From: Podarcis filfolensis
Lineage: Eukaryota
DNA length: 64,000 nt
NCBI GenBank assembly: GCA_964270895.1
Contig: OZ185445.1
Strand: one strand, 5' to 3'
The translations under genes were made by a program, and so were the position numbers. Below are positions 15,601 through 64,000 of this stretch, in pieces. Within the stretch, counting starts at the first letter, position 1. Each line of letters opens with the position of its first letter. The notes beneath the pieces are model-generated. The model saw only the letters and a program-made list of their open reading frames with translations, did no database searches and was not told the origin of the DNA.

Positions 15601-18600
15601 ACAACATGGGTGTTATGTGTCCTGAGTTCCCTGGTAGGTGGGGAGATGGCCTGTTCTGGACAGTGTTAAAAGGGACCTCTTGGGGGTACTACTGAATCCA
15701 GCATTATCACTGGAGGCTCAAGCAGCTATATGCCCCCTTTTCAACAGAAATGACTTGGTCACTCTGCTCCATGCTCTGGTAACTTCCAGGTTGGATTATT
15801 GCAACACATTCCACACAGGGTTCCCCTTGGAAACTTTTAACTGGTCCAAAATCATAATTTAGAACTCATATAACCCCTGCTTTAAAACAGCTGTGCTTGT
15901 TACCAGTTTATTTCAGGGACCAGTTCAGAGTGCTCACTTCAGCGTTCAAAGCCCTAAATAACTTAGGACCAAATATCTGAAAGACCACCGACTTTTTTAC
16001 ATACTCTGTCAGGGATTGAGATTGGCACATGGTGCCCTTTAGGTGGGGGGGGGGGGTTTGCCCAGGAGAAGACAGCCCCTAAGCTCTGAATTCCCTCCTC
16101 ACAGAGTGGTGCCTGGCCCTTTTATTCTCTTGTTTTCATTATATGATGCTTAAGACCCACCTCTTTACTCTGACATTGACATCTGGGAAATATATTTCTA
16201 ATACCCACTTTGTTTTGATTGTAAGCTGTTCTAACTGATTTTAATATTGTATTTTCACACTGTTTTAACCTGCCCTGGGATGTTATGGGGAAGGGTGGGC
16301 TAGAAATCTTACCAATAGTTACGATAGTAATGCATTATTGCCATAGAAAATTCTTAAATTTTTGTTTTCTTGCTCACAAATCTGTTTCTCCCTTTGCTTC
16401 GCAGATGTATGGGTGGATATGTGGCCTGTGGAGATTGAAGTTCTACATTCACAATAAAACTTTGGTTTTTTTTCCAGGAGGCAGGGTCAAAAGTGTCTTA
16501 ATGCCTGATTTCTCGTAACACCTCTTTGCTTGTGTTTAACTTCAGATCGCTGTAGACATTAAAGCAGCAAAACGAGAACTGAAGAAAGCCAGGACTGTTT
16601 TACAAATGGATGAGCTCAAGTGTCGTAAACGTGTTTTGAGAAGGTTGGGTTTTGCAACCTCCTCGGACGTCATAGAGATGAAAGGCCGAGTCGCTTGTGA
16701 AATCAGCAGGTAACGTATGTTACTGTTGTAGAAAAGACAGGCAAACAGATGTTTGTATGCAATTTCCCTCTGTGTAATACAGTGGGACATTCTGACACTA
16801 AGGAGAAATCTCATGTTAAAACATATGGGTGGGCAGTATTGAAGTGATCCTAGGTTATTGAAAGTGAAACACACAGTAAATTTAAAGGACAGAAAAGCAC
16901 AGTGAGGCTGGGATCCAGAGAACGCCATGAACCCAGCAGGGCTTTGGTTTGTGTTCTTCTAAACAGCAGCCCCCACATAGCCACTTAAGCAAACTACTTT
17001 GGAAATTGCAGGTCCTTTCAGAAGCAGTTTATTTGAAATACTTTTACCCCACCATTTATCAGGGTGGCACCGGGTATCTCCTGCTCAGAGGAAGTAAAGT
17101 CAAAAATTGTACTGGGTGGGCCCAGTTTGTGAGCATACCTCAAACCACTGTCTGGATCCCACTTTGAAATATGATGTCAAAGATACATGGTATCTACTCT
17201 TTAGATCCCTATATTAGTTTATAAAACAAATATTATGGTGTTTGTGTAAATCATCTAGGAGTGGCACTCACTCTCTGATAGCAACACCTTAACATATTTT
17301 GAATATTCAACACTATTAATTGGTAACAAAAAAGCTGCAAACCCAGAACAAGAATGTGAAATCTGGAACTTTATGCGACTTCTTTGTGTTCATTGTTTAG
17401 ACTCTGCAGAGTGTTCCATTACAGGAGGTGGACTCTTCTTAAGATGAGCTTGGGTGTCCGTCTGTCATGGATGCTTTCACTGAGATTCCTACATTGCAGG
17501 GGGTGGGACTAGATGACCCTCTGGGTCCCCTCCAACTCTATCATCCTATGATTGTCTATTAACTTGCTAATGTTACATCTGAAAATCAGAGGTGTCTTGG
17601 TTTAGCTTGGCAGAATTAACCCAAAATATGTTGTGACTTTGTAATAGTAACCATTAGAGTATAGAAAATTATTTAGAAGCTTGATATATGGTCCTTTTTA
17701 AAATTTTGTTCTTTCTCTCCAAATAAACATGCTTATCCAAGTTTGTTTATTCCCTTCAGTCTCATAAAATACACTGGGCAGGATTCAGCTGGTGAGTTGT
17801 TAGTGGAGGCCCTGCACCAGGGCTTCTGCTCATGCACTGGCCACCTCCTGTTCCCCCAAACACCCCCAGACATTGGCTGCGGGGCTGGGTGAATCTCCAG
17901 AAGAGTGCATGGGAGGAGGCTAGCGGGGATAGATCCATCTGGCAAGCCAAAACCCTTACCCCCATAGTTTTGGCACCAAAGTGCAGTGTAGATTCTGTTC
18001 TGGCTTAATCTCCTCCAGCAAGTCCAGTTTCAGCTTCTGAACACTACATGACATGCTAATCCATCTTGGCCTTTGTTTCCAAATTTTGTTTCTCAGGACC
18101 CCTGTAGTTTTCTGGTATGCCATCTGTAAAAGTTATGACGACATCCAGATACTTCACTTGCTTGCTTGCTCCCCCTCTTTTTCTCCGTGGTAGTGGAAGG
18201 GCACTTTCTGGCTTAAATGTCTTTATTATTAATTATTCTGCCTTTTGAACAGAAGCTACTGATCAGTTTTCCAGAGAATTGCTTTCAAATGTATAAAAGG
18301 ACGAAGAAATATCTAACCCTGTCGATTGCATCTCCTCTTCCAGTGCTGATGAGCTGTTGCTGACGGAAATGATGTTCAATGGACTTTTCAATGACTTATC
18401 TGCAGAACAAGCAACTGCTTTACTAAGCTGCTTTGTATTTCAAGAAAATGTAAGTTAAGTTTGCATAACCAGAAAAACCTAAATTTGATCAGCCGTAATT
18501 TATATCCAAATGAATGTTTTGTTCTACCTTGCTTTCTAGTCAGAAAAGGGGGCTAAAAAGCATTTGTAAAACTAATATACAATCCTAGATTCAAGGTTCA

Positions 18601-21600
18601 TTAAGCTAAAAAAATGGGCATGGTACATGCAGGATCAGACACTACCGTGCAGGGAGGGCAGGAGAGTCCTGGACTTTCACTGGGTTGAGATTTTCTCCTG
18701 ATAAGTAACACCAGAGGAAGCTGGAAACAGACAGTCAAGCAGACAGAACCAGAGCAGAGAAAAAAGGAGTTTAAATGGTACCCACAACAATCAAGACCTC
18801 TCCTACTGAGTTCCTTGTCTCAAAATGATTTTTTTAAAACTCAGTTTTTATTTTAATTTTCCTAGCTGTTTTTATTTTAATTTTCCTATATTATAAAGTG
18901 CATTCCAAAAGTGTCATTGGTCAGGATCCAGAAAGTTTCATGCATGAGAAGAAAGCAGTTCTGTACATTCACAAAGAAGTTTCTGGTTTCTGTTCTCCCC
19001 CCGCCCTACAGCTGTGTTGTCCTGCATTGCATCCCATATTGCTGCCAAAGGAGCCCCTGCCCCTCTGAAGAACATAAGCGGAAGTGGATGTGCACATGAA
19101 ACACCCAAAGTTTATTGCATATATTCAGTAGAGAGGAAAAAGACATTTCTCTGAAAGGCGGAAATGAAAATGCCAAACAAATAAGTATCAGAAACTTAGG
19201 CGGAATCCACTGTTGTGCAGGTGGACTTCCTCTCAGTGTGTGACTTCGCTTTCCTCTCCTCTCACTCCAGCCCCCTATGCACCCCCCAGAATCTGCTCTG
19301 GAGGGGTTCCCTAATCATCTGGAGCAGGTACTGAGGGTATGTGGCAAGCTGCATAAAAGAGGAAGGTGAAGGCTGTTTTACTTTTGCATGGCCAGTGTTC
19401 AGTATTTCTTTCCCCTCATCATTCAGTTGCATTTTTCAATGATAAGTTATTTGTAATCACTGGCTCCTATGTCAAATATCTAAAGAGCATTTTTGAAATT
19501 CTGTGGTTCAGTGGTAATCTCAAAGTTTATTTTTGTTCCAAGTCTATGTGTTGTAATATATTGGCATTGGGATAATATTTCACTGAAAAGAAGTCCAGAG
19601 GCCCATATTCTGGACTGAAGTTTGGCACTACTCTTATTATTGGTCTATTTTCTATAAAAGAAGCTTTCTTAGGAGTGTTAAAGGATTGATGAGCGCAGTC
19701 CACCACGCATTTGATCCCACACGTTCTCTGCTTGTTTCAGACTTTGTGCACCAGCTACATAACTTGTGGTCTTTAGAGAAAAAATTATAAATTAATTTAA
19801 ATAATGCCAAATGAATGGATATTGATGCTTTCTTCATCTTTTTTTCAGTCTAGTGAAATGCCCAAACTAACAGAACAGTTGGCAGGCCCCCTTCGCCAAA
19901 TGCAGGTAAACTTCAGCAGATTTTTCTGGCATAGGAAATGCCGCATTCATTACTAAATGGTTTTACAAGCCATTAAAAGTCAATTACCTTCCCTTTCCTG
20001 CTCTGCAACCTAAACCATACTATATATTTGAGATATTGCACCGGCACAGCTCTTGATATGCCTACACATCGTGCTAGCTTGGTACATTTAAAAATTAAAT
20101 TTTATGGGGTGTTTGGGATGATATAATCCAAAATCTTTCTTGATATCTTTTAAAGTTTGTCTTTAAATTTTAATACCATTAAGATAGCTTGAGGATGAGG
20201 TGAGGTGTTTTGGAATATTTTATCCAGTGAGGGTTTTTGTGTACTAGTGACTTATCCAATATGGTTTTTGCATACCAGTGAGCTACATGAGCCTGTTAAA
20301 CTAGCATTTTCTTCTGTGTTTACTTATGAAGGCCCATGAAGACATCTGTCTGGCAGTCTCCACTTCCTCAATGGCTGCATTTAGATTAACAAACCAAGAT
20401 ACTGCTTTGTAAACTGCCTGGACATATTTAATCAGAAATCAATCTATAAATGTTGCAATTATCCCTCATACATCTCACACACAGCTGCTCTGCTCCTCTC
20501 ATCAGGAGCCAGGAAAACTCCAGTCAACTAGTTTCCTATTACATCCAAACTGGAAGGTATGATAAATGAACAAACCAAGGTGGTTTAAATTTGTCTTAAT
20601 GTCCTGACTTGTTTGGATGCCGCTAGTCATAGCTTCCTGGTTTAGATGTAAAGGAAAATGATCACTATCTGATGTGTTCCTGGCTTGCTCACTTGTTTGA
20701 AGGGAGGAGTGAAGCAGGTATGTATGAGGCAACACAATCAGTGTGCCAGTGTGGTGTAGTGGTTAAGAGCGGTAGTCTCGTAATCTGGGGAACCGGGTTC
20801 GCGTCTCCGCTCCTCCACATGCAGCTGCTGGGTGACCTTGGGCTAGTCATACTTCTCTGAAGTCTCTCAGCCCCACTCACCTCACAGAGTGTTTGTTGTG
20901 GGGGAGGAAGGGAAAGGAGAATGTTAGCCGCTTTGAGACTCCTTAAAGGGAGTGAAAGGCGGGATATCAAATCCAAACTCCTCCTCCTCCTCCTCCTTCT
21001 TCTTCTTCTTCTTCTTCTTATTTCCCTTCATGTACCTGCGTGGGCCTTAAGTTACTCGACGGAGACCTTGGTCTAGGTGGCCCTGGGAAATGAGGTGAAG
21101 TGGGTGGCTGCTGGGAAGTGTAGCTTCTTGCCCATGGCACCCTGACTGGGAAGTTGACTCCATGGAGCAGCTCTCCTGGCTCTGTGGTCTTTTTAGCACC
21201 AGACCTTTGTATTTCTCCAGGCTTTTTATACAACTAATGTGTCAACAGAGTCTTAGCTTTCTGTGCAAGTTGTTTTCTTTTTCAAATTGAGCTTCTTGTC
21301 AGTTGTATTTTCCCTTATCAGAAATGATGTTTTTAATCTTGTTTTTGAACATTGCATTTTCTTGTTCTTTTGTAAGCTACCTACGGAACAAGCGGGCCAT
21401 ATAAATCTAGCGCTGCTGCCACTGAAAATAATAATCTCAGCTTGTTAACAGTCAATTGGCTGGCGTGCATATTTCAGGAAGATAACTTTCATTTGGTTTG
21501 TCTCGAATTTTCAAAATCCTCTTTAAAGGAATGTGCAAAAAGAATCGCTAAAGTGTCGGCAGAAGCTAAATTGGAAATCGACGAGGAAAACTACCTGAAT

Positions 21601-24099
21601 TCGTTTAGGCCGAACTTGATGGATGTCGTGCACACATGGGCCAATGGAGCAACGTTTGCTCACATATGCAAAATGACAGATGTCTTTGAAGGTACGTGCA
21701 CTTGTATTACTACTAATGCATCCGAGGTGTGGGATGGTAGGATAGTACAGTTGTTTGCATGACAACAGTCCCCTCCACTGAGGCCTCCTAATCAGCAGCC
21801 TGTGGGAGAATCTTTCTCTTTTGTCTCTCCTCCCCATGGCATGCTTTCTGCTCCTATTCTTTTTTCTCTTTCTCCCCCGTGTGTCGCTTGTGTTCTGTAT
21901 CTCTCAATGTGCACACATGTAGACAGCCTGATCCTTGGTTCCACTGAATTCAGTGAAGTCTACTCAAATGTTAACTATGCATAGGATCAAAACTGTCTTT
22001 TAACCTTGTGTGGTTGGTACAAGAGGGAGAATGAGAAGTTGTTGTTGCACCTTTTCTCAGGTGCTTCGATTGCTTCCCAGCTACTAGCCATTTCTGCTAT
22101 CTTTGCAATGATGGCATGGATTGTGTGCTGTAGCAGTCATCACTTTGGACACAGCAGAAATGTTATTGGGGGTAAAGAATAAGAGAGGCTTGAAGTCACT
22201 TGTGTCATATACACAATTTATTTGGTTGCAGTGAAGCAGGCAATCAATTCTGTGGATGGTTGCATTTGCAAATGCCATATAAAAATCTCCCCCACCCTCC
22301 TTTCCCATGCAGATAGGTAGTAGCAGTAAGACTTGCCCAATAAGTGAACTTTTTGCTGCTAGCTGGAGACGGAGACTTGCTCGATGGGCCAAGTTTGACA
22401 TGCAGCATCAGGCAGGGTGGGATAATTAAGCTTTGTAAGCTGCCCACAGTAGCAATTTTCATTGGTAGGGTAGAAATTATATAAAACACAGACAAGGCAC
22501 TGACCATAGTAGCATAACCCCAAACCACCATCACACCCATTTTTGCAAACGCAGAGTAAATGGCACATTCTTGTTTCCATATGGCAGATAAGCAATCCCT
22601 TTAACAGAAGAAGGAGTAAATACTGAGAGAAAGGCACTTTTTCTCTTTGTCATGACAAAGTCCATCTTAAGTGAAATTTCAGTGGCCATGTACATCATGT
22701 TGTGGTTGAGAGACTGGAAAGTAGAAAGTTCATATAGTTCAGTATGTCTAGCAGAAAGGCAGATGGAGTATATTTAAATGTCCTTTACTCCATACACACA
22801 TCCTCTGTTTTAACCATACAAAAATGCTTCTGTGGATGTAAAAGTGTTCTTGGTTGCATTTTCATAATGAGCCCTGTAAGAGAAGTCAGTCTATACAACC
22901 AAAGTGATGGTTTGCTCAGAATACAGCATGCAGCAAACCCTTGGAGGATATATCCCAGCTTCTTTTGGCTCAGACTTCTGTCTTTTTGGTAATTGACTCC
23001 AGGTGGCTTTTTACTAGAGTTGCTGGATCCGGAATCAAATGATTAAATTTAATCTCTTGCTGAGACTGGCTGATAAAACCTCGATTTCATTTCTTTTTAA
23101 CTTACAAACTGAGAAGAACACACATTCCTAGCCTATAGATTTCCACACCTTATACCTGCTCCACCATGTATCTAAATGCATCCCATAGTCTTTGAAATGA
23201 AGCCATTCATTTCCTTCATGTACACACTACAAAAATATGCAGGAGGTTAGGAAGAAGGAAGCTTGGTACCCTGCTTCTTATGATGGGGTAGCCTGAGAGC
23301 TGCAATGAGAAGTCTGTGCAAGAAGAATAAGTTAAAAACCTTGCCTTAGGTTGACTTCTAGGTGATAACGTTAGTTGGAACCCATCTTTTCTGATAACAC
23401 AAGTTAGGAAAATTAATACTCATGACCTTATGATTATCTGTTTGGGGGAAAACTATAGGACTGAGATGTTTCAGTCCTGCTTGAGTAGACAGCTTTACAA
23501 CTACCTGGTAGAAAAGGATCTGCTATTCCTCATTAGAAAATGTCTGCTTTTACTGCAAGCCCTTTTTTGCTCATGCAGGGAGCATAATACGCTGTATGAG
23601 GCGGCTAGAAGAATTGCTTCGACAGATGTGTCAAGCAGCAAAGGCCATTGGAAACACAGAACTGGAAAACAAATTTGCAGAAGGTCTGTATGTTCAGCTT
23701 CTTATAAATGGCATGCATCTTGAAATGTAGAGTCTTTTCACAGGCAATTTTAAATTTCTTAAACAAGTCAGAGTGTCCCTAATGTATTAATGGGAGGTTC
23801 CATGTATCCTTTATCTGCTGTGATCCAATTCTTTATGGAGCAGATAACTGGAAAGCCCTTGATGTCTCCACAGCCCCCTCAAACTAGTTATACACGCATT
23901 TGAGATGGAAACTGGGGAAATGATACTCAATTTGAAATTGATACTGAGCTTCAACTCAGGCGCATTGTTAATATATCCCCTGTTTCTAGTATCAGCAATA
24001 GGTACAGCTACTCTTATGACATCATATTATTTTCTTCCCTTAACAGGCATTACCAAAATCAAGAGAGATATTGTATTTGCTGCAAGTCTTTACCTATAA
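573..24099 (+). CDS. MTREX: Exosome RNA helicase MTR4, 3' part of gene (14 coding exons, 565 aa to stop; corresponds to about human exons 14-27). 5' exons lie before the window.
   Basis: Exons 573-674, 1179-1304, 7245-7395, 8330-8502, 9698-9766, 12032-12160, 13952-14062, 14402-14590, 16546-16709, 18344-18449, 19849-19905, 21529-21691, 23579-23683 and 24047-24099 are all AG/GT bounded. They join in frame (1698 nt) to give [18 protein letters not shown]...[10 protein letters not shown]...[12 protein letters not shown], matching recalled human MTR4. Confidence 0.98.
1179..1304 (+). CDS. MTREX: MTREX exon (motif VI: [42 protein letters not shown])
   Basis: tttcAG acceptor, GTATCT donor; 126 nt. 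Confidence 0.97.
1471..1636. mobile_element. Tc1/mariner-superfamily (pogo/Tigger-like) MITE
   Basis: Imperfect 23-bp TIRs (CCGTATTTTTCCATGTATAAGAC / CCGTATTTTTCAGTCTATAAGAT), TA on both flanks, internal direct repeat GGGGGCATCTTATACATGGGGG. Confidence 0.85.
4030..4210 (+). mobile_element. Degenerate 3' end of a squamate CR1-associated LINE/SINE family
   Basis: catctggttggccattgtgag...ggcctgatccagcaggctcttc tail motif; related reverse-strand remnants near 46100-46330 and 48985-49070. Confidence 0.5.
5490..5695 (+). mobile_element. Old MIR/CORE-like tRNA-derived SINE remnant
   Basis: gctaggtgactttgagccag core-like block, 3' gtcttgagtgccttgagg and an aataaataaa tail. Confidence 0.4.
7245..7395 (+). 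CDS. MTREX: MTREX exon ([50 protein letters not shown])
   Basis: ttttAG acceptor, GTAAGT donor; 151 nt. Confidence 0.97.
8330..8502 (+). CDS. MTREX: MTREX exon (arch stalk: [57 protein letters not shown])
   Basis: ttgcAG acceptor, GTAAGT donor; 173 nt. Confidence 0.97.
9698..9766 (+). CDS. MTREX: MTREX exon (KOW region: [23 protein letters not shown])
   Basis: ttttAG acceptor, GTAAAA donor; 69 nt. Confidence 0.96.
12032..12160 (+). CDS. MTREX: MTREX exon ([43 protein letters not shown])
   Basis: ctgtAG acceptor, GTGAGA donor; 129 nt. Confidence 0.96.
13952..14062 (+). CDS. MTREX: MTREX exon ([37 protein letters not shown])
   Basis: taatAG acceptor, GTACTA donor; 111 nt. Confidence 0.96.
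14402..14590 (+). CDS. MTREX: MTREX exon ([63 protein letters not shown])
   Basis: tttaAG acceptor, GTAAGG donor; 189 nt. Confidence 0.97.
14635..14790 (+). mobile_element. Degenerate tRNA-derived lizard SINE
   Basis: B-box-like gatcccagattcaatccccagcatctccag; same family as the copy at 53821. Confidence 0.45.
15480..16310 (+). mobile_element. L2 LINE 3' remnant
   Basis: Residual ORF2 peptide [14 protein letters not shown] (TSRLDYCN at 15782-15805), an upstream ANK-KLNP-like block, and an L2-type 3' end near 16260-16310. Confidence 0.75.
16546..16709 (+). CDS. MTREX: MTREX exon ([54 protein letters not shown])
   Basis: cttcAG acceptor, GTAACG donor; 164 nt. Confidence 0.97.
17410..17553 (+). 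mobile_element. CR1 LINE 3' end
   Basis: gcagggggtgggactagatgaccctctgggtcccctccaactctatcatcctatgatt terminal motif. Confidence 0.75.
18344..18449 (+). CDS. MTREX: MTREX exon ([35 protein letters not shown])
   Basis: ttccAG acceptor with an upstream CTAAC branch-like motif, GTAAGT donor; 106 nt. Confidence 0.97.
19849..19905 (+). CDS. MTREX: MTREX exon ([19 protein letters not shown])
   Basis: tttcAG acceptor, GTAAAC donor; 57 nt. Confidence 0.96.
20745..21019 (+). mobile_element. Relatively intact tRNA-derived SINE (CORE-like body, L2-type tail) ending in (CCT)n(CTT)n
   Basis: A-box-like TGGTGTAGTGG, B-box-like GGGTTCGCGTCTCC, ctgggtgaccttgggctagtca core, retained CpGs, simple-repeat tail. 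An older copy lies at about 50376-50510. Confidence 0.8.
21529..21691 (+). CDS. MTREX: MTREX exon ([54 protein letters not shown])
   Basis: ttaaAG acceptor, GTACGT donor; 163 nt. Confidence 0.96.
23579..23683 (+). CDS. MTREX: MTREX exon ([35 protein letters not shown])
   Basis: atgcAG acceptor, weak GTCTGT donor; 105 nt. Confidence 0.96.
24047..24099 (+). CDS. MTREX: MTREX last coding exon ([17 protein letters not shown])
   Basis: taacAG acceptor; canonical MTR4 C-terminus; TAA at 24097-24099. Confidence 0.97.
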
Positions 24100-24295
24100 G
24101 TATTGTCCTGGCACGGAGTTTGAACATCACCAATTATTCTTCAGAGGCAGAAGTGTAAAGTTAGCGACAGAATCTGCCAATCCTTCCCAAGCAGGAGAGA
24201 TGCTTAACATTCTTGTATGTATTTCACCATAAGCCTCATGCTAGCAAGCATATTACATACCATTGCTGTTTGTACATAAGTGTTACCACATTATT

Positions 24296-24305
24296 TTTAA
24301 TTAAA
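24296..24305. terminator. Palindromic TTTAATTAAA giving ATTAAA polyadenylation hexamers on both strands (candidate PAS for MTREX and PLPP1)
   Basis: + strand ATTAAA at 24300-24305; - strand ATTAAA at 24301-24296; lies between the two stop codons. Confidence 0.4.
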
Positions 24306-24446
24306 AAAAACAGCCAGAATACTGTGTGTTTAAAGCAAAAGCTTGAACCAATAGAGATTTAAAGTTTAGATACCTAAGTGTTACTATATACATGTAAAGT
24401 GAGCATCCAAGAAGTATAATAGCAGCAGCAGTCCCTTCAAGAGGCA

Positions 24447-24457
24447 TTTAATTTATT
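24447..24457 (-). terminator. Candidate proximal PLPP1 polyadenylation signal AATAAA overlapping ATTAAA
   Basis: Plus-strand TTTATT at 24452-24457 and TTTAAT at 24447-24452, about 80 nt after the PLPP1 stop. Confidence 0.35.
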
Positions 24458-24536
24458 TCTTTACATAGGTCAGAAATGCTTGATGTTTTCTTTTTATAGA
24501 AGGGGAGATTCCACAGGGTAATAGCTGTTGACTTTA

Positions 24537-24668
24537 TCATGGCTGGTGATTACTGCCATAGTGATTTCCACTGGTAGGTGTCTCGTGTAAGGTTGTGTGT
24601 GAATCTTCTTCCTCCTTCTGTTTAAATGTACGACCTCTGTCTTTGAAGAAATCAGATACATACACAAC
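24537..24668 (-). CDS. PLPP1: PLPP1 last coding exon ([43 protein letters not shown])
   Basis: Minus strand: atccAG acceptor; TGA stop at 24539-24537. Confidence 0.96.
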
Positions 24669-30600: not shown

Positions 30601-32524
30601 ACAATGCATGGCAAGCAAAGTACAATGGATTGTATTAGTCACAATGTACCCACTATTACAAGGCATGTAGTACATACAAGTGGCACTCCAGAATCATCAA
30701 AATAAGTACAATACTATAATTAATGATATATTTTTATATATCTTTGACGCAAGAAAATTCTTGGAAGTGGCAGAGCAGCTGTAGCAAACAGGACTGAAGC
30801 CCGGCGATCCCAGTTTCAAAGAGAAACTCCAGCCTGTGAAGTTAACAAGGTCCCACATTGGGTTGAGGCGCTTGCTGCGTGCTGGCTAGCAGAGCCTAAA
30901 AGGTCACCCACCCCTGGCCTAAGAAGTACTTGCATTACGAACTGAAGTAATAATGTGATGCATTTCTAGCCTGCTAGCAGAAAAGTGATGACAGAAATCA
31001 CTACATGTGGAAAATGCTTACAGCAGTGCCTGCCATAGAGATGCAAATGCCAAGGCCCCTGTAACATGCAGCCTGGCCCTGAGCAAAGGGAGGAACATTC
31101 ATAAATTAGCAGCATGGCAGTTGAATTTCTCCACTATCATTTTTGTCGTCCTCTGAAGGCTGCTGTTTCCTTAGGTATCAGATGCTTTTACCTTTGGTGG
31201 TCTCTGCTTAAAAGTGCCTTTAATTTGCTAAATTAGAATACCCCCACAGCTCCCTTCGAGATGTGTTTATAGAATGTGGTTAAGCTTTCACTCATAATGA
31301 AAACACAGCCTCTTCACCACATACATCCTGAGCACTGTGTTCCTCCCACTCTCTGGTGAAATGCTCCACTTCTGCCACATGCACCACCTTTTAGAAGAAG
31401 CCACAGACCCAAGTGGAAGCAGAGAATGAACTGCTTTTGGAAAGGCATTTACAAATGTTGCAGCAAGCAGAGGTTGCAGTCAAATGGATTTTGGGAGTCA
31501 CTGTTAATACTCTAGAAGATCTGATCACAAGAGGAACAGTGGTAAGCAAGTAATTCTTTCCAGCCATGACAAGGGGAGTGTTATTTCTCCCTCCCCAAAT
31601 GTTGTTTTGTCACAGTCTACATCATGCAACCCGAAGGAGGGCGATCAGTAATTTCATGTGGGTGACAAGCAGAGAAGAAATGGGGAAAGCTAGAAGGAGG
31701 AAGTGTTCAATAGCAAAGGAGGTGCCTTGCACCATTTTGGCTCCAACTCTGTCCACTGCCCTCAACAGACCTAACCCAATCCAACCCAACCCTGCCTTAT
31801 AGCAAATTCTGGTGACTTGGCCTCCAGAGATTCCTTTGCTCTACATGTGTCTAATTCACAAAGGAAGTACCTTCTCTCCTGTGCTAGGGACCCTATTTTT
31901 CTAGCATCTCATCCAGTCTGATTGTACAGGAATAAAGTAAGCTAATCTATGGAATCTACAGGATGAAGGGTGGTATACAAATATTTTGAACAAACACTGA
32001 TGAGATATGTTCTCATGAGTCTCTTACATGAAGGTAGGAAAGGGGGCAGTTTATCATCTGCTTATAAAACTGGATCTCAGTGTGAACTTAACATTTATAG
32101 CCTGTTTAGATTTTTCAGAACTCTTTTCTGATGGGGATTGAGTGAAAGGCAGAACTTTGGGGAGAAAATGAATGTGTGTAGGGGACTGGGCCCAGATTAA
32201 GGGGTGTACAAGATAATGTTTTAGCTTTCAAGCTTTTCTTAAGAATTAATCCAATGTGGTTTTAGGCCCTTCTCTATAGCACCATAGGGGTTACAAACAA
32301 ACCAAAAGCAGAACTACTGGAGACAGTGCGTCAGACCATGCCTGCTGTTTACAGCCACGATTCTGGAGAACCATTAATCCTTTATATATTTTTTTAACTT
32401 GAAGAGGTCATATATTTTAGGGAAGCTTTTCATATCTGAAGGACTATTGTATTTTAATATTTTGTTGGAAGCTGCCAAGAGTGGCTGGGGAAACCCAGCC
32501 AGATGGGCGGGGTATAAATAATAA

Positions 32525-51351: not shown

Positions 51352-51385
<34 letters not shown>
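51352..51385. repeat. (AC)17 microsatellite flanked by a 13-bp direct repeat
   Basis: GTAGAAGCATCTA at 51336-51348 and 51386-51398. Confidence 0.9.

Positions 51386-52132: not shown

Positions 52133-52204
<72 letters not shown>
52133..52204. repeat. Compound microsatellite (AC)8(AG)28
   Basis: Read directly. Confidence 0.95.
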
Positions 52205-53820: not shown

Positions 53821-54520
53821 CACTGGTAGAACAGATACTTTGAATGCAGAAGGTCCCAGTTCAACCCTTGACTACTCCAGATAGGGCTTGGTAAAGACTC
53901 CAGTCTGAAAAACCATCCATGTAAACCAGAGATACAAGTAGTCAACACGATTGTGTCCAGATGTTATGGAACTACAAAAAATCCCCTTCCAGAACAGATC
54001 CTGCTCCTGTAATAAGAAAACACCAGATACAATACATCACATAATTTTGGATTGCCCTCTTCTTGACACCCTTTGCAGAGATCTCCTAGTGACTCCTGTA
54101 CAGCTTAAAATGTTGATTTACAAAGAGTCTGTAATCCAATATTTGTTGAGGGATAATACTCCCGAAACTACCAAGATTGTATTTAGCTGAGATTTTTAAA
54201 GCTAAATCTAAAATTGCCTGATTTACTCAATTGTGGCTATGTAGTCTTTTATATATTGTATGTGTTTGGATTCTTAGTGTATTTGTATGATTTTATGATT
54301 TTGTTATTTAAATTTATGCCAATAAAGGCCAAATAACAACTACAACTCCCATCATTACTGGTCATAGCCATGTAGGCTGGGGCTGATGGGAGTTGAAGTC
54401 CACAACGTCTAGATTACAACCATGTTGGATACAACCATGTTGGCTACCCCTAGTGTAGACAAAACTGAAGTAGATGAACCAACTGCCTGACTCAGTATAA
54501 GGTAGATTCCTGTGTCCTTA
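53821..54520 (+). mobile_element. Nested cluster: SINE head, LINE 3' fragment with CCHC-like motif, MITE remnant, SINE tail
   Basis: SINE head 53821-53935; ORF 53951-54190 containing CSC-x5-TIHHIILDCP; 3' UTR ending tgccaataaagg; actacaactcccatca hairpin; SINE tail gtgtagacaaaactgaagtagatg...ctcagtataagg. Confidence 0.55.
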
Positions 54521-57500
54521 TGTGAAGGAATTGACATCTTTTAATGAAGGGTTTTTTGGGGGGAGGGGGCAGCAGGGGAAAGGAAAGGAAGGGGAAATGT
54601 TATTGGCACAGGCAGAATTCCATTGTGCAAATGGACTGACACACTTGAATGTCACCCAGTGATTTTTTGTTTGTTTCTTAGGAAGCACGTGCAACAAGAT
54701 AAATAAGAAAAAAGTAGGGTAAATTTCAACTAGTGCCCCCTCACACAGAGCTCTTTTGTTTGCCAGCTGACTATTCATGGTAAAAACAAGTACACAAGGT
54801 CAAGTCTAGTGCTGCTGCTCTGCTTTCCTTCAGTGTTATAGTTACTATGCTGAGAAGTTGGATCAGCAAGTCAAGGAATGCTCATCTTAATACAGTATAC
54901 CTGACCTTTCTACAAAAGAACTGGGGCATATCATTTTCCACTAGGAAAACGTATACAATTGGCAATACAAATCCCATATTAAATCCTAAAAATATTTTAA
55001 AGTGTATGTAGCACGTATGCCAGAGTTATTTTAGCTTCCTTCCAGTTTTGATGTTAGCACTCTAACCTCACCTACAAATAGAAAAGTTTTCCCCTGGTTA
55101 AACTTTTGTTGCTCTACCTCCTGTAATAACTTAAAAGACACATTATGAACAGATGGGCACCTTATGCTAAAAATATATGTTTATACCTGCATTTGCTTAT
55201 GGCCATTTCACACATGACCCTTCCCTGCCATGGGTACAGAGAAAAAAGGGGGAAAGAAAGAAAAAGCACAGCCATCATGCACCACCAGTCCAAATGGGTG
55301 TATTGTGCTATGGCTAAAATAAGTGGCTGTTTTAGTGGTGCACCCTTATTAGTTATTTCAGCCATTTAAATATTTTAGTAAATTAACTATTTGGTGCTTT
55401 AATCTGAATATATGTTATATGCTGCCTCTCCTCCTGGAAAGCGACTTTGAGAAAACTAATGGCTTCTCTGAAATATAAGGCAGTATACGATTTAACAAAT
55501 ATTACCACACATTGCTTTAACATTGCCTTTCTCCAGTTTGAAAGTACAGCACATGCCCTATTAAAAAGTAACAAACCAAAATACTTTTTTTTTAAAAAAA
55601 GACAAGGCTATCAGTATAGTGGAAAATCCATTGAAGAGAGGCAAATATACAGTTCATCCAACCATTGTTGGATTCAGCCATCTGCTCTTACTGTTAGAAA
55701 GAAAGCAACTATAGTGCCACTTTGAATGACAAATTATTTTTTATTATATTGAGATACCAGCTTAATGGAACCTATCGCGGGGGAACAGGGAGTTAAATGC
55801 AGCTTGTGCACAGACAAAAACTAGACAACTTGTTCTGAATCTGAAGGTAGCAACACAGTTATTTTTCTTTAGATCAGGTAAACTGCAACCCTGGGAAAAT
55901 GTTATTAACATGTAATCTATTTATATTTTACTGACACATTTGTTGAAGGCTGATTTCAAAATAACCTTACTTTGCTCCCTAGACGCTTTTTTTTTTAGTT
56001 TAAAAATACCAAGTGCCCTTCCTTAGGCCAGACAAAGGCAATTTAAATTTAGATGTGCATATTTATGTGCAGTTGTGGGAATCACTCTTTCAGTAAGGTT
56101 TAAAGTTGTATGTTAATTGCAGTAAGACAGCTCACATTAGCTCACAGCGACTTAAAAAAAAATATAGACCAATGATTTGAGTAAAATGAAAACTGACACC
56201 AACATTTAGTTGGTGTTATATGGACATATAAAAACAGCTTCTTACTTTAAGTAACAATTTTAAGATATTCTGGCCACTCAACGTGCTCATAAAGCTGCTG
56301 CTGAAACAGCACAAGCAAACAGCCCAAATAAAACTTCTCACTTTTACAGAGCAATCCAGCTTCTCCCATAGGAATCGTAACTCTGGACACAATCCAGCCA
56401 GTTAAGCACTCTCCGCATTGATTTCAGTGAACAAGAATTAAAAATGTGGTTGTAATCCTATGCACTTTCTAGAGAGTAAATTCTACTGAACAGGACTTAA
56501 GTGTTGGCCAAAGATGATTCAGACTATGCTGCAAATCTATCCTATTAACAGAAAACTGGACTTTAACTTAACTTTCGTTGGATAATGCTCTTTGAGGGAA
56601 ACAGCTTTGAAAGTTGCATTAGGGACAAACTCAACTGTAAATAATGTGTAAATACAATCTTATAAAACACACATACACCACTTATGAACCAGAGTCTGTG
56701 AAGACCTAATGCAATCATTAAAATGCCAGCATCTGTTAAGTTTCATTTACCTGGACATCTGTGGGAATATCTACATGTTCACGGTAGCAGAGTGCCAGTG
56801 CTGGTCTTGGATATTTTGGCATCTGTTGCAAAACGTTAAAATCACACTTGCAAAGCCCTTAGCACCTTTCAATGAGCTTCTCACCAACAACAGATGTCAA
56901 CCAGCTCTTGTTCACAGGACTTTAATGGGGAGCCAAGCCTGGAGGGGTGGAGGAGTAGAAGTATGTGGCACTGCAAAAACCCAGGTGCTTTGCTGTTTTC
57001 CCCCGCCTCCCATGTTTATGTGAAGCAACACAGGACAGACACTTCTAAAATTAACAGCTGCTGAGACTCACAGCGGCAAGTCACATATTTGTCTTAATTG
57101 GCATGGCATTTCAATTGCTAGCTGTACACCTGTACTGCTTTCAATATAAGTAAGATTTAGTCAAGATGCTCAGAATGGATGTGGCACCCACAGGGAAAGA
57201 ATCCCCATTGCTTTCCCCCTTACACTTGGAAACCACCCATTTCCCCCATTTTGTTATTATTAAATGTTTATACATTACAAATAATGCTATGAACAATAGA
57301 AAAATCAAACAAAATGCAGATATAAGGTAATTGGATACACAAATATAACATCAAACAAAATTTACAGAACTGTATATGTGAATATTATCTCATTATTTAT
57401 AAATGCTATTTTAGGTCACAGAAATATAAAGACCTTATTGGAACATGAGTAATAAAAGTTGTTTATGTATATTGTCAGCAAATATTGCTATATGTCCCCT

Positions 57501-57638
57501 ACCATATACTTTGTACTTTGTTACTGGAGTAGAGGAAAAACAGACTCAGTTTTTCCCATTAATTTATAATATTTTTGTCTGCCTTTTCCTTAACCTTCTC
57601 AAATTTCTCTATGTGTCCATATAACCCAGGGAACAATG

Positions 57639-57640
<2 letters not shown>

Positions 57641-57674
<34 letters not shown>
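57641..57674. repeat. (AC)17 microsatellite upstream of the granzyme promoter
   Basis: Read directly; ends 138 bp before the TATA box. Confidence 0.95.
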
Positions 57675-57678
<4 letters not shown>

Positions 57679-57780
57679 CAACAACAACTGTGCATGATAA
57701 TTTTGCTATTATTGATCTTGGCTAGGAGAGGGGCAAAAGGTAGAATAATTTGAGGCGGGAAAAGAGAAAGAAAGAAAAAA

Positions 57781-57820
57781 ACCCACAGCTCACTTCCTTC
57801 AGATAGTCAACCTATATATA
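57781..57820 (+). promoter_or_regulatory. Putative granzyme proximal promoter: RUNX-like ACCCACA, ETS core ACTTCCT, TATA box TATATATA
   Basis: ACCCACA at 57781-57787, ACTTCCT at 57792-57798, TATATATA at 57813-57820, 44 bp before the ATG at 57865. Confidence 0.6.
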
Positions 57821-57864
57821 GCAGGCACATGTTCTGAAGGGGACTCAAAGCAGTTACCAGCACC

Positions 57865-57925
57865 ATGGGGCTTTTCTTGGTTTTGTCCTTCTCGGCGACT
57901 TATTTTCTCTTCAAAATTCAGACTG
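57865..57925 (+). CDS. GZMA: Granzyme exon 1, signal peptide ([21 protein letters not shown])
   Basis: Strong Kozak gcaccATGG, hydrophobic peptide, phase-1 GTAAGT donor matching the phase of exon 2; TATA box about 45 bp upstream. Not in the ORF track. Confidence 0.85.
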
Positions 57926-60900
57926 GTAAGTTAGTTCTACATCTGTTTTGTCTTCCCTCAGCAACACATTCAGTGTAAGGAAAACAGGGCTGGCTTCAGA
58001 TTCATGGGATTTCTGATATCCCTCAATACCTGCATTCTACAAGACTTACCTCCCTCTTGTCAAGTTTGCAAAACTTGGCTGTCCAGCCATTCCCTATTTG
58101 AAGGAGTTACCACTGACTGATAATGGCAAGTAGGTAGAACCTGTGCTGCTGTTAAAAGATTTCAAATTCAGGCAGATAAGCTGGCATGTTGGTAAGTTCA
58201 GAACATGCATTGAAAGGGGCAAATATGGCCACAGAAAGTGTTGCAGCAGAGGCAATTCTACTGCAAACAGTGTGCTCCAAAAAGGGATGTCATGGCAGCT
58301 AGGCGAGAGCTAGGCAAGCCATGGATCCAGCTTCTGGAGAAGGGCTGATTTGGGCACCTCTGCATGGAGCTAGTACAGCAAAAAAAAAAAATTAAAAAAT
58401 AAAAAAAAAAAATTGCAGAAGCTGTCCACCTTACACTGTGGCTGGCAAGAAGTACCTTCAAGCCACTAGTTAAGACTGCTCTGCCAGAGCAAAACTTTAT
58501 TTTGCTTCTCTACATAATTTATATCCCACACTTGCAGCAGAAATGTATGTTTCCAGGGCAGCTAATGAAGTAGCATAATAAATGTGCAATACTTTTGAAA
58601 AATGAAATAAAGGATACAAAGGAAAACAGGAAGAGTCCATTCAATTAGACTGCAAACTCATAATTAATCTAAATTAAAATTTAGCAGTTCTTAAAGCCTA
58701 GGAAAATGGAATTTTTTTGCCTGGCACCTGTATTAAATTGACTATAATAAATTCAAGACAGAAGGGACAGAGCTACTTCCAATTGCTGGGGGATGGATGT
58801 TATCTGAAAAACCTACCCTGCAAGAAGAAAATAAGCACATCAGGCAGAGAGGTTTTAGCCTAGCACTACCTCTGTCATGCTAGCTTTCTACTTGCAGGGA
58901 GCTTTTGAAGTACAGTATGTCAGAGGGATTTTAAAAATGTGATCACCTCTTCCATCTGAAATGTTACAGATTATCCACTTTTCCCCACTTCATTCTGCTG
59001 CATCTGTAAAGCTAGACAAAAAGAGAACGAGAAAACAAGCAGACTGAAAAAGGTTTAAGCATATATAAATTCCTTGTAAACTATTGCTATTTAGGTACTT
59101 ACTATTTACTAAATCTTTGTTATTTTAATGGGACTTGGGCCCACCCAACATTTTGTTTATAGCATCTGGAAAGTATAACACCACAGAAAAGAATTATCAG
59201 TTCTATGTCAATGTTCTATTTTCAATCATATGGCCAAAGTCCCATGTAGTTGGGATGAAAAATAAAACCCTTTTCCTTGCTGGGGTTTTTACTCAAGAGA
59301 AGATCCATTGAAATTAATGGCAATTAACTTCAGTCACTTAATCCCGATGGGTCTACCCTGAGTAACAGCTGGTTGACTACAATTGTGGGTCTCCCAATCC
59401 CACAGGGATTACTTCTGGGCCGCTGCATGGATGTGATGCAGGCTCATAAACGTTGCAGGCTATCTGTCATCAACTTTTGTGGGAACAGCATTTAAATGTT
59501 TGCATGCCCATGCAATCACACCATTGCAGTTTTGAGCAGCGACTATGCCAAAAGTGTTTGAATTAGGCTTCAGGAGCATTAACTGATGTCCTAATATCCA
59601 GCATGCCATTGAATCGACATAAAATTCCATTGATGTGCCTATCAGCATGTGCTTTAACACAATTACATTAACCTTTAATCTGAAGCACAGCATATATAAC
59701 ACAATTTGATTAGTGTGTCTTATTTCTACTTAGGTCAATCTACAGATATAATTGGGGGCAAAGAATCAGTTCCACACTCAAGACCTTATATGGCTGCCCT
59801 CATTATACGTGTTGAAGGTAACACATCCTTATGCGGAGGTACTTTGATTAAAAGGAACTGGGTGTTAACAGCAGCTCATTGTTTTCCGTAAGTATAGAGA
59901 AGTATGTCTATTCTTCAGAGTTCTTCCTGGTATAGTTTTGCATGGCCCTTTAGGCAAGCCCTTTAGTTGTTATTCTGTCAGGTCACAGCCTTTGCCTCCT
60001 AGTGTGAGCTGCTAGTAGCAGCTGCCTGCTGTAAGATCCAAGAAAATGAGAATGGCAAGAAAATCCAGTAGATCAGGGTTGGGTAACTTGTGGTACTCAA
60101 GACTAGATGTTGCAGGACTCCAACTTTCATCAGCCTCAGCCACCCTGGCCAGTATAGTCAGTAATGATGGGAGTTGTAATCCAGCAACATCCAAAAGGCC
60201 ACAGGTCGTTAGCCACTCTGCAGTAAATCATGGATTCTTGACTTAAGTGCAATGTGATATTGCAGTGCGGGTTGAAAATCTGGGAAACATTTTGTTTTGT
60301 GGTCCCAAGTTCAAAGCAGTGCAGATTATTATGAAGTTAACACTTTTACAAAGGACACACAATTGCATGTCACTTGACTACTTAGTATTTGTGGCTGATT
60401 CACAAAGGCATGCACATAAATTTGATTTTCCAGTGCTTGAAGGATTAACTTGATAACTCACAGCTCAATGTGTACGCTTTATCCAGTGGCGTAGCGTGGG
60501 GGTGCAGGGGGGGCCGGCCGCACCGGGCGCAACATCTGGGGGTTAGGGTTAGGGGGCGCAAATCCACGGGTTAGGGGGCGCAAATTACTTGCCTTGCCCT
60601 GGGTGCTGACAACCCACGCTACGCCACTGGCTTTATCTGTGGTGTTTAATCTGTAATGGCTCACATCACATGTGCAAGTCAACACTTCATTATGATCGAA
60701 GATGAAGATGATTCCAGTAGGAATGTAACACACACCCGGTTATTGTACTAGTCAATATACTGAAACCTGTAGGTAATTTACTGGTACAAAGCTGTGGCAG
60801 TTATTTTACAAGAGAAGTGGTGAAGATGTTTTATCAGCTAGCAAACTCCTGCAAATAACTTCTCCAGAGTTCCTCGAGCTTGATTTCAAGGACGGGGGAA

Positions 60901-63497
60901 CAGAACCTTTTATGGACCCACGTTCATAGTGTTAAAACAGTAGAGAAGATTTAATGAACTACTTTATAAAAATATTGAGTGAATGTAGCTGTTTTTAACT
61001 TCTAGAAGTCTTAACTTGATAGGTGTAGAGCAGTGTTTGCAAATGGGGGCCATATACTCCCCCAGGGGCCTCCAGGATATTCCAAGAGGGCCCCAGGTGA
61101 AAAATCTTTTCAGGTCAATTCAAAGGCCAAAGCTATTCAGTGGAGGAGTCAGATGCACCTCTGTTTGAGGGGGAATTCCACAGCTTAGGGCAGTGGTTCT
61201 CAACCAGTGTGCTGTGGCATCCTGGGGTGCCTTGAATGATGGCCAGGGGTGCTGTGGGCAATACTGGCTTCTGTCCCTCTTTCCTTCCCTTCCTCCTCTG
61301 ATGCCCTCTTGCATCCCTGCCTCCCAAAGGCTTGCACAGCTGATCATTGCAGCAGTCCTGGCTACAAGCTCCCCCAGTGAATGATGCCTGTGGGGCTGGC
61401 CAGGGAGCGCTTCCCAGGCCCCTATGGGGCAGTGGCAGGGCGCAGCAACTAAGAGACCAGGGGCGGCAACTGTGGCTGCCCAGAGGACTCCCAAGGAGAG
61501 GGGAGGAGGAGGCTGAGGAAACACTCCACAAGGGAGTGTGTTTGAAAAAAGGGTGAGAGGCTGCCAGCTCTGCAGGCAAGGGTGACATAACTGGGCTCCT
61601 GAGCCCCACAGGGATGCCGCAGAAAGAATGTAGTTGGTCAAGGGAGCCGTGTACTCAAAAAGGTTGAAAACCTCTGGCTTAAGGTCTCCTACAGAGAATA
61701 CCATCTTCTGGGCTACCATCTATTGAACTTCTAAGGGCAACAGCACTACCAAGAGGAATATCTACTGATCTTAACAGCCAAGAGCATCTGTTGGGAAGGA
61801 GGCAGTCTTTCAGATATTATGACGTATTCTGTATCAGGAAACAAATGCTGGCTTTCCATTCATACCTTTCTGTGCAATGCCCACAAGACTTTGGCTTCTC
61901 AACCACACAGTAAACAATGGGGTATTATATCCTGTACTACTTATATAGACGATTAAGTTCAAAATGGATAAAAAACAGCAAAATCTTACACGTTTATTCA
62001 GAAGGGCCATTGTGTCTAGTGGGGCTTACTCCTAAGTATGTTTCAGACTGCAGCCTAAGTATGCAGTATGCAGAGTGTGAAATGTACCGTATGACAACAC
62101 AGACTCAAGAATATTGTGTAAAGCCACAGGAGAGTGCAAAACAAATATTAATGCACTTGCTGGAAGCAAATGTTGATCAAATCTTTGATCTTTTTTTATC
62201 TTTTCAGAAAAGAAAGGAAAAAATCAATTCCACAAGCAATAGTTTTTCTTGGTGCTCATTCACTAACTGGAAAACAACAACAACAGCGCATTAAAATTAT
62301 TGGAAGATATGGTCACCCACAATATAATGAAAAGACAATGGAAAATGATATTATGCTTTTGAAGGTACTTTTAAATGGAATGTGAATATTCTGGGGGCAA
62401 AAATAAATTTTATACTTATCTTTCTAAATATCTTTCTTGTCAAGTGAATTGGATGCCTTAAATTTTAAATAGGCAACAGTGTAATCAATGCACATATCTA
62501 CTCAGAGGTAAGCCCCACAGAGTTCAATGGGAAACATATTACAGCCTTAGTTGGTTATTCAACTAGAAAGCATAGGAAAGTGTTAGTGTTATTCTTTGGC
62601 AAAATTAGTGATCATCATCTGGCTGTTCTTATTCAGCCTGCTTAGTTATATGAGTTTTCCTGGGAGACTTGCCAAAGCCTGAGCTTAAGCAACTTCTACA
62701 AGAAGCATAAAGCAGAGCTTCCTCCTCTTTAGTCTCAATATTGCTCTTGTAGAACTCAGCAATAAGGACTGATCCAAAAATAGAATTAGTTGGCTCTGCT
62801 TGTCATTGGCTCCACCTACTGTTGGTCTCCCAGCCCTCAGCTCTACCAAGCCCAATGGGCGCCACTGACATGTCATTAGAGACTGATGTTTGGTTTCTCC
62901 TACAGATTATTTTTTTAAGTAGCTGAAGGCTGAATCATTTAGATAACTCATTATCATATAGTATAATAGTAATATTGTGCAGGTGCGGGTGTGTAGTTAA
63001 GCAGGTAGGGCTTTCTGATCTTGGAACTGTTAATTCCTGATTCTTTGATCATCTGTAGTAACGCTACCTGTTTGTCACTGAATCATTAGGAGAAACAAAT
63101 GTACATTATATTACAAATATGTTATAGGTCTTACAATGTACTATAAAATAAAAGGAAGTCTAAAATGAGATTATTCAATTGTGCTCTGTTTATAAGTACT
63201 CTTTCCCTTTATTCTTCTTTTAAGATGGAGAAAAGTGCGAAGACTGACCAACATGTCAAATGCATTGAGCTTCCTAGCACTTCCAATGATGTTGAGGCAG
63301 GAACACAGTGTCTAGTAGCTGGGTGGGGAATTACTGATAACAAAAGCAGGAATATATCCACTATGCTTCGTGAAGTTAATGTCACTGTTATTCAGAGAAG
63401 TGTCTGCAATGATGAGAATCACTATAAGCATTCGATGTATGTGACAAGTAACATGTTGTGTGCAGGAGATGACAAGGGAGGAAAAGATGCTTGTGTG
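57865..63497 (+). CDS. GZMA: Granzyme A-like trypsin-type serine protease, exons 1-4 (215 codons). Exon 5 with the catalytic Ser lies beyond the window.
   Basis: Exons 57865-57925, 59734-59887, 62208-62364 and 63225-63497 join in frame with the granule-protease phase pattern (1,2,0,0). They encode a signal peptide, a TD dipeptide before [12 protein letters not shown], His57 (LTAAHC), Asp102 (NDIMLLK), VAGWG, CNDENHY (GZMA-like rather than GZMK-like by recall) and Asp189 (GGKDAC). The A-versus-K assignment needs a phylogeny. Confidence 0.85.
59734..59887 (+). CDS. GZMA: Granzyme exon 2 (QSTD|[46 protein letters not shown]; His57)
   Basis: acttAG acceptor, GTAAGT donor; 154 nt. Confidence 0.95.
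60074..60220. mobile_element. Older palindromic hAT-type MITE in granzyme intron 2
   Basis: CAGGGTTGG.../...CCACTCTG ends; TSD CAGTAGAT / CAGTAAAT (1 mismatch). Confidence 0.75.
60484..60629. mobile_element. Very young GC-rich hAT-type MITE with TTAGGG motifs in granzyme intron 2
   Basis: Perfect 17-bp TIRs CAGTGGCGTAGCGTGGG; perfect 8-bp TSD GCTTTATC at 60476-60483 and 60630-60637. Confidence 0.93.
61191..61676. mobile_element. hAT (Charlie-like) non-autonomous element inserted into an L2 remnant
   Basis: TIRs CAGTGGTTCTCAACC / CAGAGGTTTTCAACC; TSD GCTTAGGG / GCTTAAGG. The flanks (gaattccacagc... and ...ggaggcagtctttcagata) resemble antisense L2 sequence. Confidence 0.8.
62208..62364 (+). 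CDS. GZMA: Granzyme exon 3 ([52 protein letters not shown]; Asp102)
   Basis: tttcAG acceptor, GTACTT donor; 157 nt; phase fits exon 2. Confidence 0.93.
63225..63497 (+). CDS. GZMA: Granzyme exon 4 ([17 protein letters not shown]...CLVAGWG...CNDENHY...[15 protein letters not shown]; Asp189)
   Basis: tttaAG acceptor, GTAAGA donor; 273 nt. Confidence 0.95.
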
Positions 63498-64000
63498 GTA
63501 AGAGTGTTTTTATTTACCCATTCTGTCTTCCTTAAAAAAGCTATCAACTGATTAAAGAACTTAACCATCTACCTATCCACTGTTTGACAGATAAATAAAT
63601 TTGTATTTAATCAAAGTCACATGTGTGTCTATGAGATATTGAAAGAAGTGTACAATAAACTGCAGTGCAATCCACATGTTTACACGGAAATAGGTTCCAA
63701 TATATTATGAGATGCTTACTTGTAGGAATGTATATTTAGGGTTGAAATTCTGAAAGTTAATGAACAAAAACTCGTGAATAGGAGGAAAGCAAAAAGCAGA
63801 TCCCTACTCAAGAATTTCCAAACTAAATTTGAAGTTAGGCAAACAGTTTTGATTAAATATGCATGTGATTATTATGTCCTGCTGCACCCCTATCCACACT
63901 TACTAAGAGCCAGCCACACTAAATTCAGTGGAACTCACTTCAAGGAAAACATGGACATGATTATGTTGGATTACATTTTTTTACTTCTAACCGTTTCATA

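Follow-up and report, generated by a model that had tools for sequence, protein, structure and literature searches.

We found that, in the lizard Podarcis filfolensis, a serine protease gene of the granzyme A/K type, an immune protease, is nested backwards inside intron 3 of PLPP1, which encodes a lipid phosphatase. The analysis covers a 64-kb stretch of contig OZ185445.1 (64,000 nucleotides, hereafter the window), which holds four granzyme exons and exons 4–6 of the host gene. The nested position in this lacertid was confirmed by comparison with the collinear locus of Podarcis muralis. We consider it highly probable that the gene is an extra granzyme A/K paralogue with its own promoter, relocated at the DNA level into PLPP1 intron 3 in antisense orientation, and that this position is restricted to lacertids. 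The arrangement had been proposed in a sequence-only reading of the window, which described a promoter and granzyme exons 1–4 at 57.8–63.5 kb on the strand opposite PLPP1; these elements could all be read directly in the window.

The granzyme gene runs on the plus strand, with exons 1–4 at 57.8–63.5 kb. Its TATA box (TATATATA, 57813–57820) stands 45 nt upstream of the ATG and is kept in P. muralis; the ATG itself lies at 57865 in a Kozak context (CACCATGG). The coding part of exon 1 (57865–57925) specifies a 20-codon hydrophobic signal peptide and ends in phase 1 at a gtaagt donor. Exon 2 (59734–59887) carries the end of the propeptide and the mature protein from its N terminus, IIGG, to TAAHCF, which includes His57. 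Exon 3 (62208–62364) ends in ENDIMLLK, with Asp102, and exon 4 (63225–63497) contains GGKDAC, with Asp189, and ends at a gtaaga donor. Canonical ag/gt splice borders flank exons 2–4, and the reading frame is open in each of exons 1–4. Exons 2, 3 and 4 match successive parts of the Pfam Trypsin profile (PF00089), at positions 1–44 (E = 7e-14), 52–93 and 95–176, respectively, and so encode a trypsin/chymotrypsin fold. Exon 5, which encodes Ser195, is outside the window; in P. muralis it begins 453 bp after exon 4. In pairwise alignment the last 196 bases of the window (63805–64000), within intron 4, are not collinear with P. muralis. This segment is probably a repeat insertion, which would have pushed exon 5 past the end of the window.

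The far side of the nested gene was established from related lizards. A word search with the exon 4 open reading frame (ORF) found a ‘granzyme A-like’ protein of Zootoca vivipara (XP_034956474.1, 89% identity to exon 4), and a profile search found the P. muralis protein A0A670JSD6 (P0022), which is 95% identical at the amino acid level across exon 2 and 94% identical across exon 4. The A0A670JSD6 cluster includes the RefSeq protein XP_028604941 (‘granzyme A-like’), and we refer to the genomic locus of that protein in P. muralis assembly GCA_964188315.1 as L003. Window positions 53923–63804 align in order to L003 1–11472, with 3.7% substitutions outside exons, and 19 of the 20 signal-peptide residues of exon 1 are the same in P. 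muralis (L003 4778–4837). At this locus, granzyme exon 5 lies at L003 11620–11781, and PLPP1 exon 3, containing SLTDIAKYSIGRLRPHF, follows at L003 15324–15043 on the minus strand, 3.3 kb past the last exon of the granzyme. Two genes are called there: a 154-aa Trypsin gene on the plus strand and a 286-aa PAP2 gene on the minus strand that extends across the whole 21.8 kb. The order in P. muralis, with the granzyme between PLPP1 exons 4 and 3, places the granzyme in PLPP1 intron 3 and antisense to it; both the position of exon 3 and the range of the PAP2 gene in the NCBI annotation bear out what had been proposed from the window. The guest thus lies wholly between consecutive host exons on the opposite strand, its far side in the P. 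filfolensis genome following from collinearity. The nested gene and its overlap with PLPP1 are already present in the RefSeq and Ensembl annotation of P. muralis. The suspicion that the gene might already be annotated in sauropsids was therefore correct: it is represented by XP_028604941 and by several Ensembl/UniProt models.

The host gene was identified on the minus strand from its 3′ exons, which run from 43275 down to 24537 exactly as had been read from the sequence. Exon 4 (58 nt, 43275–43218) contains the C2 motif SGH and was matched by tblastn with PLPP1 residues 164–184. Exon 5 (177 nt, 26326–26150) was likewise matched by tblastn and contains the C3 motif SRxxxxxHxxxD and has a Pfam PAP2 match (1e-9). 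The coding part of exon 6 (24668–24537, with the stop codon at 24539–24537) is 100% identical to P. muralis PLPP1 (P0422). All three exons have canonical splice sites, and together they show 81–100% identity to PLPP1 proteins. The gene is identified as PLPP1 by its PAP2 domain, by the C2 and C3 motifs, by its orthology to PLPP1 of vertebrates and by its convergent neighbour, MTREX. We searched for its remaining exons with full-length PLPP1 proteins, gathered from a representative library with the exon 3 piece of P. muralis as query, using tblastn with a word size of 2 and E values up to 1. Residues 164–285 alone matched; residues 1–163 gave no match in the window at E ≤ 1, and a six-frame motif scan of the whole window did not find the C1 motif KxxxxxxRP in a PLPP context. 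PLPP1 exons 1–3 were thus found nowhere in the window, in agreement with the sequence-only reading, which had reported exon 3 missing from 43276–64000.

The nearest proteins in the databases are all named ‘granzyme A(-like)’, and both exon 4 and the whole orthologue are nearer to granzymes A and K than to other S1 proteases. Among solved structures, exon 4 matched granzyme A at 1e-24 (89 bits) and granzyme K at 4e-21 (78 bits), with the next match after these at 1e-14 and 57 bits or less. A full-length orthologue (P0140) scored 216 bits with granzyme A, 187 bits with granzyme K and 154 bits with trypsin, and the P. muralis orthologue P0022 matches the Pfam Trypsin profile over positions 1–219 (8e-58). 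Exons 2 and 3 alone are non-discriminating: mammalian chymase, duodenase and cathepsin G match them with marginally higher scores than granzyme A does, and these chymase-leaning scores probably reflect only the mammalian reference set. A mosaic of chymase and granzyme A was considered and rejected: little separates the scores, nearly all PDB references are mammalian, exon 2 is up to 75% identical to a squamate granzyme A-like protein, and the orthologue as a whole prefers granzymes A and K. We also rejected the ‘additional chymase-related locus’ of birds and reptiles as a home for the gene, because the borders of that locus are formed by GNA11 and NCLN and not by PLPP1 (PMC8537139).

The catalytic residues are distributed over the window and its orthologues. 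His57 (TAAHC) and Asp102 (ENDIMLL) are encoded in the window, and the Ser195 motif GDSGGP, which belongs to exon 5, is present in the P. muralis and Zootoca orthologues. Asp189 in window exon 4, together with Gly216 and Gly226 read in exon 5 of the orthologue (VSFG ... YPGIY), forms the S1 pocket of a tryptase, and tryptase specificity is predicted on this basis. The Cys93 of granzyme A is replaced by Gln (YGHPQYNE in the orthologue versus FPYPCYDP), and window exon 3 encodes the same residues as the orthologue. The absence of Cys93 is the criterion by which non-mammalian copies have been called K-like (Akula et al. 2015, PMC4646688); by that criterion the protein would be K-like, that is, monomeric. 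Alignment of the orthologue to solved granzyme A revealed a six-residue insertion after His57, and the loop encoded by exon 2 exceeds that of granzymes A and K by three residues.

Granzymes A and K, the S1A peptidases of the T-cell tryptase locus, are normally encoded beside CDC20B and GPX8, and the nested copy does not share this position. In P. muralis, a tandem pair of granzyme A-like genes (annotated as a single fused model of 491 aa) adjoins GSHPx (GPX8), about 180 kb from the nested gene. Hemicordylus capensis has several tandem granzyme A-like genes adjoining a CDC20-type WD40 gene, and a second small granzyme group 270 kb off. None of the array genes located in P. muralis and Hemicordylus overlaps a PAP2 gene. 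The sequence-only reading had placed the human genes outside PLPP1, and a separate canonical location beside CDC20B/GPX8 does exist. As the canonical array is retained beside CDC20B/GPX8, the nested gene is an additional copy. The annotated PLPP1 loci of Rhineura floridana (113 kb), Eublepharis macularius (104 kb) and Anolis carolinensis (91 kb) contain PLPP1 and MTREX only. At the DNA level, we searched intron 3 of Anolis PLPP1 (L006 44136–63835) with 150 granzyme proteins and obtained no match better than E = 0.2. The sequence-only reading had left the choice between an ancestral position and a transposition; these observations fit transposition better.

To place the gene we built a maximum-likelihood tree of 51 sauropsid granzyme A-like proteins, in which the P. 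muralis orthologue served as proxy for the window gene. The P. muralis and Zootoca orthologues formed a clade (the nested clade, support 100/99) with a long stem (0.46), and this clade fell within a group of genes from squamates only, namely geckos, scincoids and lacertids. The clade had as its sister a gene from the canonical array of Hemicordylus (91/87), a placement that is tentative, as it involves a long branch. The canonical granzyme A of lacertids grouped apart, with Rhineura (97/96), and an approximately unbiased (AU) test rejected its union with the nested clade (p = 0.0019, for a group named after the tree was seen). The tree and the AU test indicate that the gene lineage is older than its present address in PLPP1. 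The gene has kept the usual granzyme introns, which points to duplication or relocation at the DNA level and excludes retroposition. On the simplest reading, lacertids acquired the gene when an array member was duplicated or shifted over about 180 kb into PLPP1; it is most likely a DNA-level relocated paralogue restricted to this family. The gene belongs to an old squamate paralogue lineage whose relatives in one cordylid remain in the canonical array. The nearby array, about 180 kb away on the same P. muralis chromosome, may have been the source of the nested copy; the nested position would occur only in lacertids, and the product may act as a secreted or granule tryptase in cytotoxic cells.

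Comparison with P. muralis provides evidence of constraint and of decay. Within exons, 12 of 642 sites differ (1.87%), and outside exons 327 of 8,919 (3.67%); about 24 exon changes would be expected, and exon divergence is half that of introns. We regard this constraint as modest. In the current P. muralis reference, a change from TCA to TAA creates a premature stop in exon 3 (L003:9875–10027; KERKK*), and 3 nt are deleted from a run of Gln codons. In XP_028604941.1, an older protein of P. muralis, Ser occupies the position of the stop and the run has four Gln; the stop is therefore recent or polymorphic, and may be a segregating null allele. The TATA box of P. muralis is interrupted by an element of about 330 bp with terminal inverted repeats (TIRs) at L003:4377–4734, matching window 57813–57820. 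This non-autonomous DNA element has TIRs of 24–26 nt (CAGTGGTGCCTCGCAAGACG...) and a TA duplication, and it is absent from the window copy. The nested granzyme may thus be functional in some lacertids and decaying in others.

Several observations weigh against the reading of a complete, relocated and functional lacertid paralogue. Exon 5, with Ser195, and PLPP1 exon 3 are both outside the window, so that completeness and nesting in P. filfolensis rest on collinearity with P. muralis. The 12 exon differences comprise 4 synonymous and 8 non-synonymous changes, one of them a stop, giving a ratio of non-synonymous to synonymous substitution rates (dN/dS) of about 0.55 on few sites. The current NCBI models begin late, at exon 3 in P. 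muralis (154 aa) and at exon 4 in Zootoca (145 aa). Four candidate sequencing runs yielded low-depth contigs, resembling those of a relative's DNA at low coverage, over introns and exons alike, with no exon–exon joints, and are uninformative on expression. Absence of the nested gene from Rhineura and Eublepharis rests on annotation only, and the nested clade sits on a long stem with a sister placement that is not strongly supported.

Some of these observations would also be expected if the nested gene were a duplicate that has lost its function or is losing it, and so is on the way to becoming a unitary pseudogene, with the open exons in the window as residues. We consider this a real but less likely alternative. 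It would account for the changes in the P. muralis reference (the exon 3 stop, the 3-nt deletion and the TIR element at the TATA box), for the shortened RefSeq models in P. muralis and Zootoca, and for a dN/dS of about 0.55 on 12 changes; the DNA-like contigs of the candidate runs gave no transcript support. However, in the window exons 1–4 are open, the splice sites, TATA box, Kozak ATG, His57, Asp102 and Asp189 are intact, and the exons have 12 changes where about 24 would be expected, half the divergence of the introns; moreover, XP_028604941.1 has Ser where the reference has its stop. At the other extreme, the gene might constitute a third, so far undescribed granzyme A/K locus of lacertids that encodes a functional monomeric tryptase, is expressed in cytotoxic cells, is coupled to PLPP1 transcription and segregates as functional and null alleles in wall lizards; as a whole, we judge this fuller scenario improbable. 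Its coupling component was raised in the sequence-only reading as interference: the head-on layout could be regulatory, with granzyme transcription in cytotoxic cells interfering with PLPP1, or the reverse. Geometry is what speaks for this, as the promoter opposes the direction of the host within an intron that exceeds 20 kb. Vertebrate introns commonly contain genes on the opposite strand with no interference that can be demonstrated, and P. muralis tolerates null alleles of the nested gene, so we consider a regulatory layout highly unlikely.

The nested position could also be ancestral for squamates or sauropsids, with repeated loss from PLPP1 elsewhere. The age of the gene lineage, which stands apart from lacertid canonical granzyme A among gecko and scincoid paralogues, is in keeping with such a history. 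It is nonetheless very improbable: intron 3 of Anolis PLPP1 has no granzyme remnant at the DNA level, no nested gene is called in Eublepharis or in Rhineura, the closest outgroup sampled, and the located Hemicordylus relatives are all in or near the canonical array, with none overlapping a PAP2 gene. An assembly artefact that joined a granzyme locus to PLPP1 has a practically negligible chance of being correct. Nothing positive supports it, and it is formally open only through the end of the sequence at 64000. The window contains no N and hence no gaps, and in P. muralis GCA_964188315.1 order and orientation are unchanged from the equivalent of window position 53.9 kb, through the granzyme, to PLPP1 exon 3. 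Misassembly, which had been named as a possible refutation, is very unlikely because this independent assembly of another species has the same arrangement. The reading of an extra paralogue relocated into PLPP1 in lacertids is therefore the one that we favour.

Other features of the window concern the neighbour of PLPP1 and the repeats around the granzyme. The 3′ exons of MTREX occupy 7245–24096 on the plus strand, with the stop codon at 24094–24096, and were recognized from ORFs and from Pfam matches to MTR4-like_stalk, MTR4_beta-barrel and DSHCT. MTREX is convergent with PLPP1, as it also is in the annotation of Rhineura, Eublepharis and Anolis. The two stop codons are 441 bp apart (window 24094–24539). 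Annotated gene ends of MTREX and PLPP1 in the three other lizards lie 446–461 bp apart. The 3′ untranslated regions of the two genes probably overlap tail to tail. Anolis PLPP1 has two alternative copies of exon 2 (L006:22892–23050 and 32282–32407), 51% identical in protein sequence, which fit the PLPP1 isoforms X1 and X2 (286 and 285 aa) seen across vertebrates.

Intron 2 of the granzyme contains high-copy interspersed repeats (60000–61800), recognized from contig depth in the four runs. Depth reached hundreds to thousands at 60.0–60.2, 60.4–60.8 and 61.2–61.8 kb, and over most of the remaining stretch was about 0–30, mostly 0–5. A GC-rich part of the same intron, at 61.1–61.7 kb, contains spurious ORFs of 158–199 aa on the minus strand. 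An (AC)17 microsatellite lies at 57641–57675, about 140 bp upstream of the granzyme TATA box; further microsatellites are (AC)n at 51352–51385 and (AG)28 at 52149–52204. A granzyme-like tblastn match at 55708–56013 on the minus strand (E = 5e-4) was rejected as chance, as it has several stops and is without protease motifs. Rfam and tandem-repeat scans of the window returned nothing relevant.

The granzyme A/K locus has been described as the most positionally conserved of the haematopoietic protease loci, from sharks to humans (Akula et al. 2015, PMC4646688). Surveys of these loci by the Hellman group place granzymes A and K in essentially one place and leave PLPP1 unmentioned (PMC4646688, PMC8537139), and our literature search for a granzyme nested in PLPP1 or for lacertid granzymes found no description. 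The nested copy is an exception to this positional conservation: in one lizard family, a granzyme seems to have left the array and landed in an intron of a neighbouring gene. The finding is also a further sign that granzyme A-like genes have undergone a large expansion in squamates that is still unexplored. A region of Hemicordylus capensis CM050091.1 (35.29–35.60 Mb) holds at least nine granzyme A-like models in two clusters about 270 kb apart; Thamnophis elegans has seven or more models, and geckos and skinks likewise have several each. Squamates thus have large expansions of this family that are apparently undescribed. The practical use of our result is modest, mainly as an annotation guide, the RefSeq models of the nested gene being shortened. 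The locus may also be a naturally occurring example of a gene arising and decaying, in which some alleles are intact and others disabled. The arrangement of a gene within a gene is itself of a common kind and opens no long-standing question, and we regard the finding as correct but modest.

Among known systems, the closest is the P. muralis orthologue (XP_028604941/A0A670JSD6), which has the same position and orientation in PLPP1 intron 3 and collinear flanks. In the current reference haplotype of that species, exon 3 carries the premature stop and the TATA box the TIR element, whereas the window copy has neither. Granzyme A is the best match among solved structures and shares with the nested gene the S1A fold, His57 and Asp102 of the His/Asp/Ser triad, the Asp189 that predicts tryptase specificity, and the exon layout, in which a signal-peptide exon is followed by exons carrying His57, Asp102 and, as read in the P. 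muralis and Zootoca orthologues, Ser195. Unlike the nested copy, GZMA adjoins CDC20B and forms a disulfide-linked homodimer through an unpaired Cys93. Granzyme K is the second-best match (187 bits) and resembles the nested protein in being without Cys93 and of the monomer type, but its scores are below those of granzyme A and its chromosomal position differs; no sequence named granzyme K was among the listed matches or in the tree. As a nested gene, the granzyme resembles other opposite-strand guests of vertebrate genomes, being a complete gene with its own promoter in a long intron of a broadly expressed host. What sets it apart is that its guest encodes an immune effector, is a copy particular to one lineage and has its array only about 180 kb away, and any functional coupling between guest and host is here purely hypothetical.

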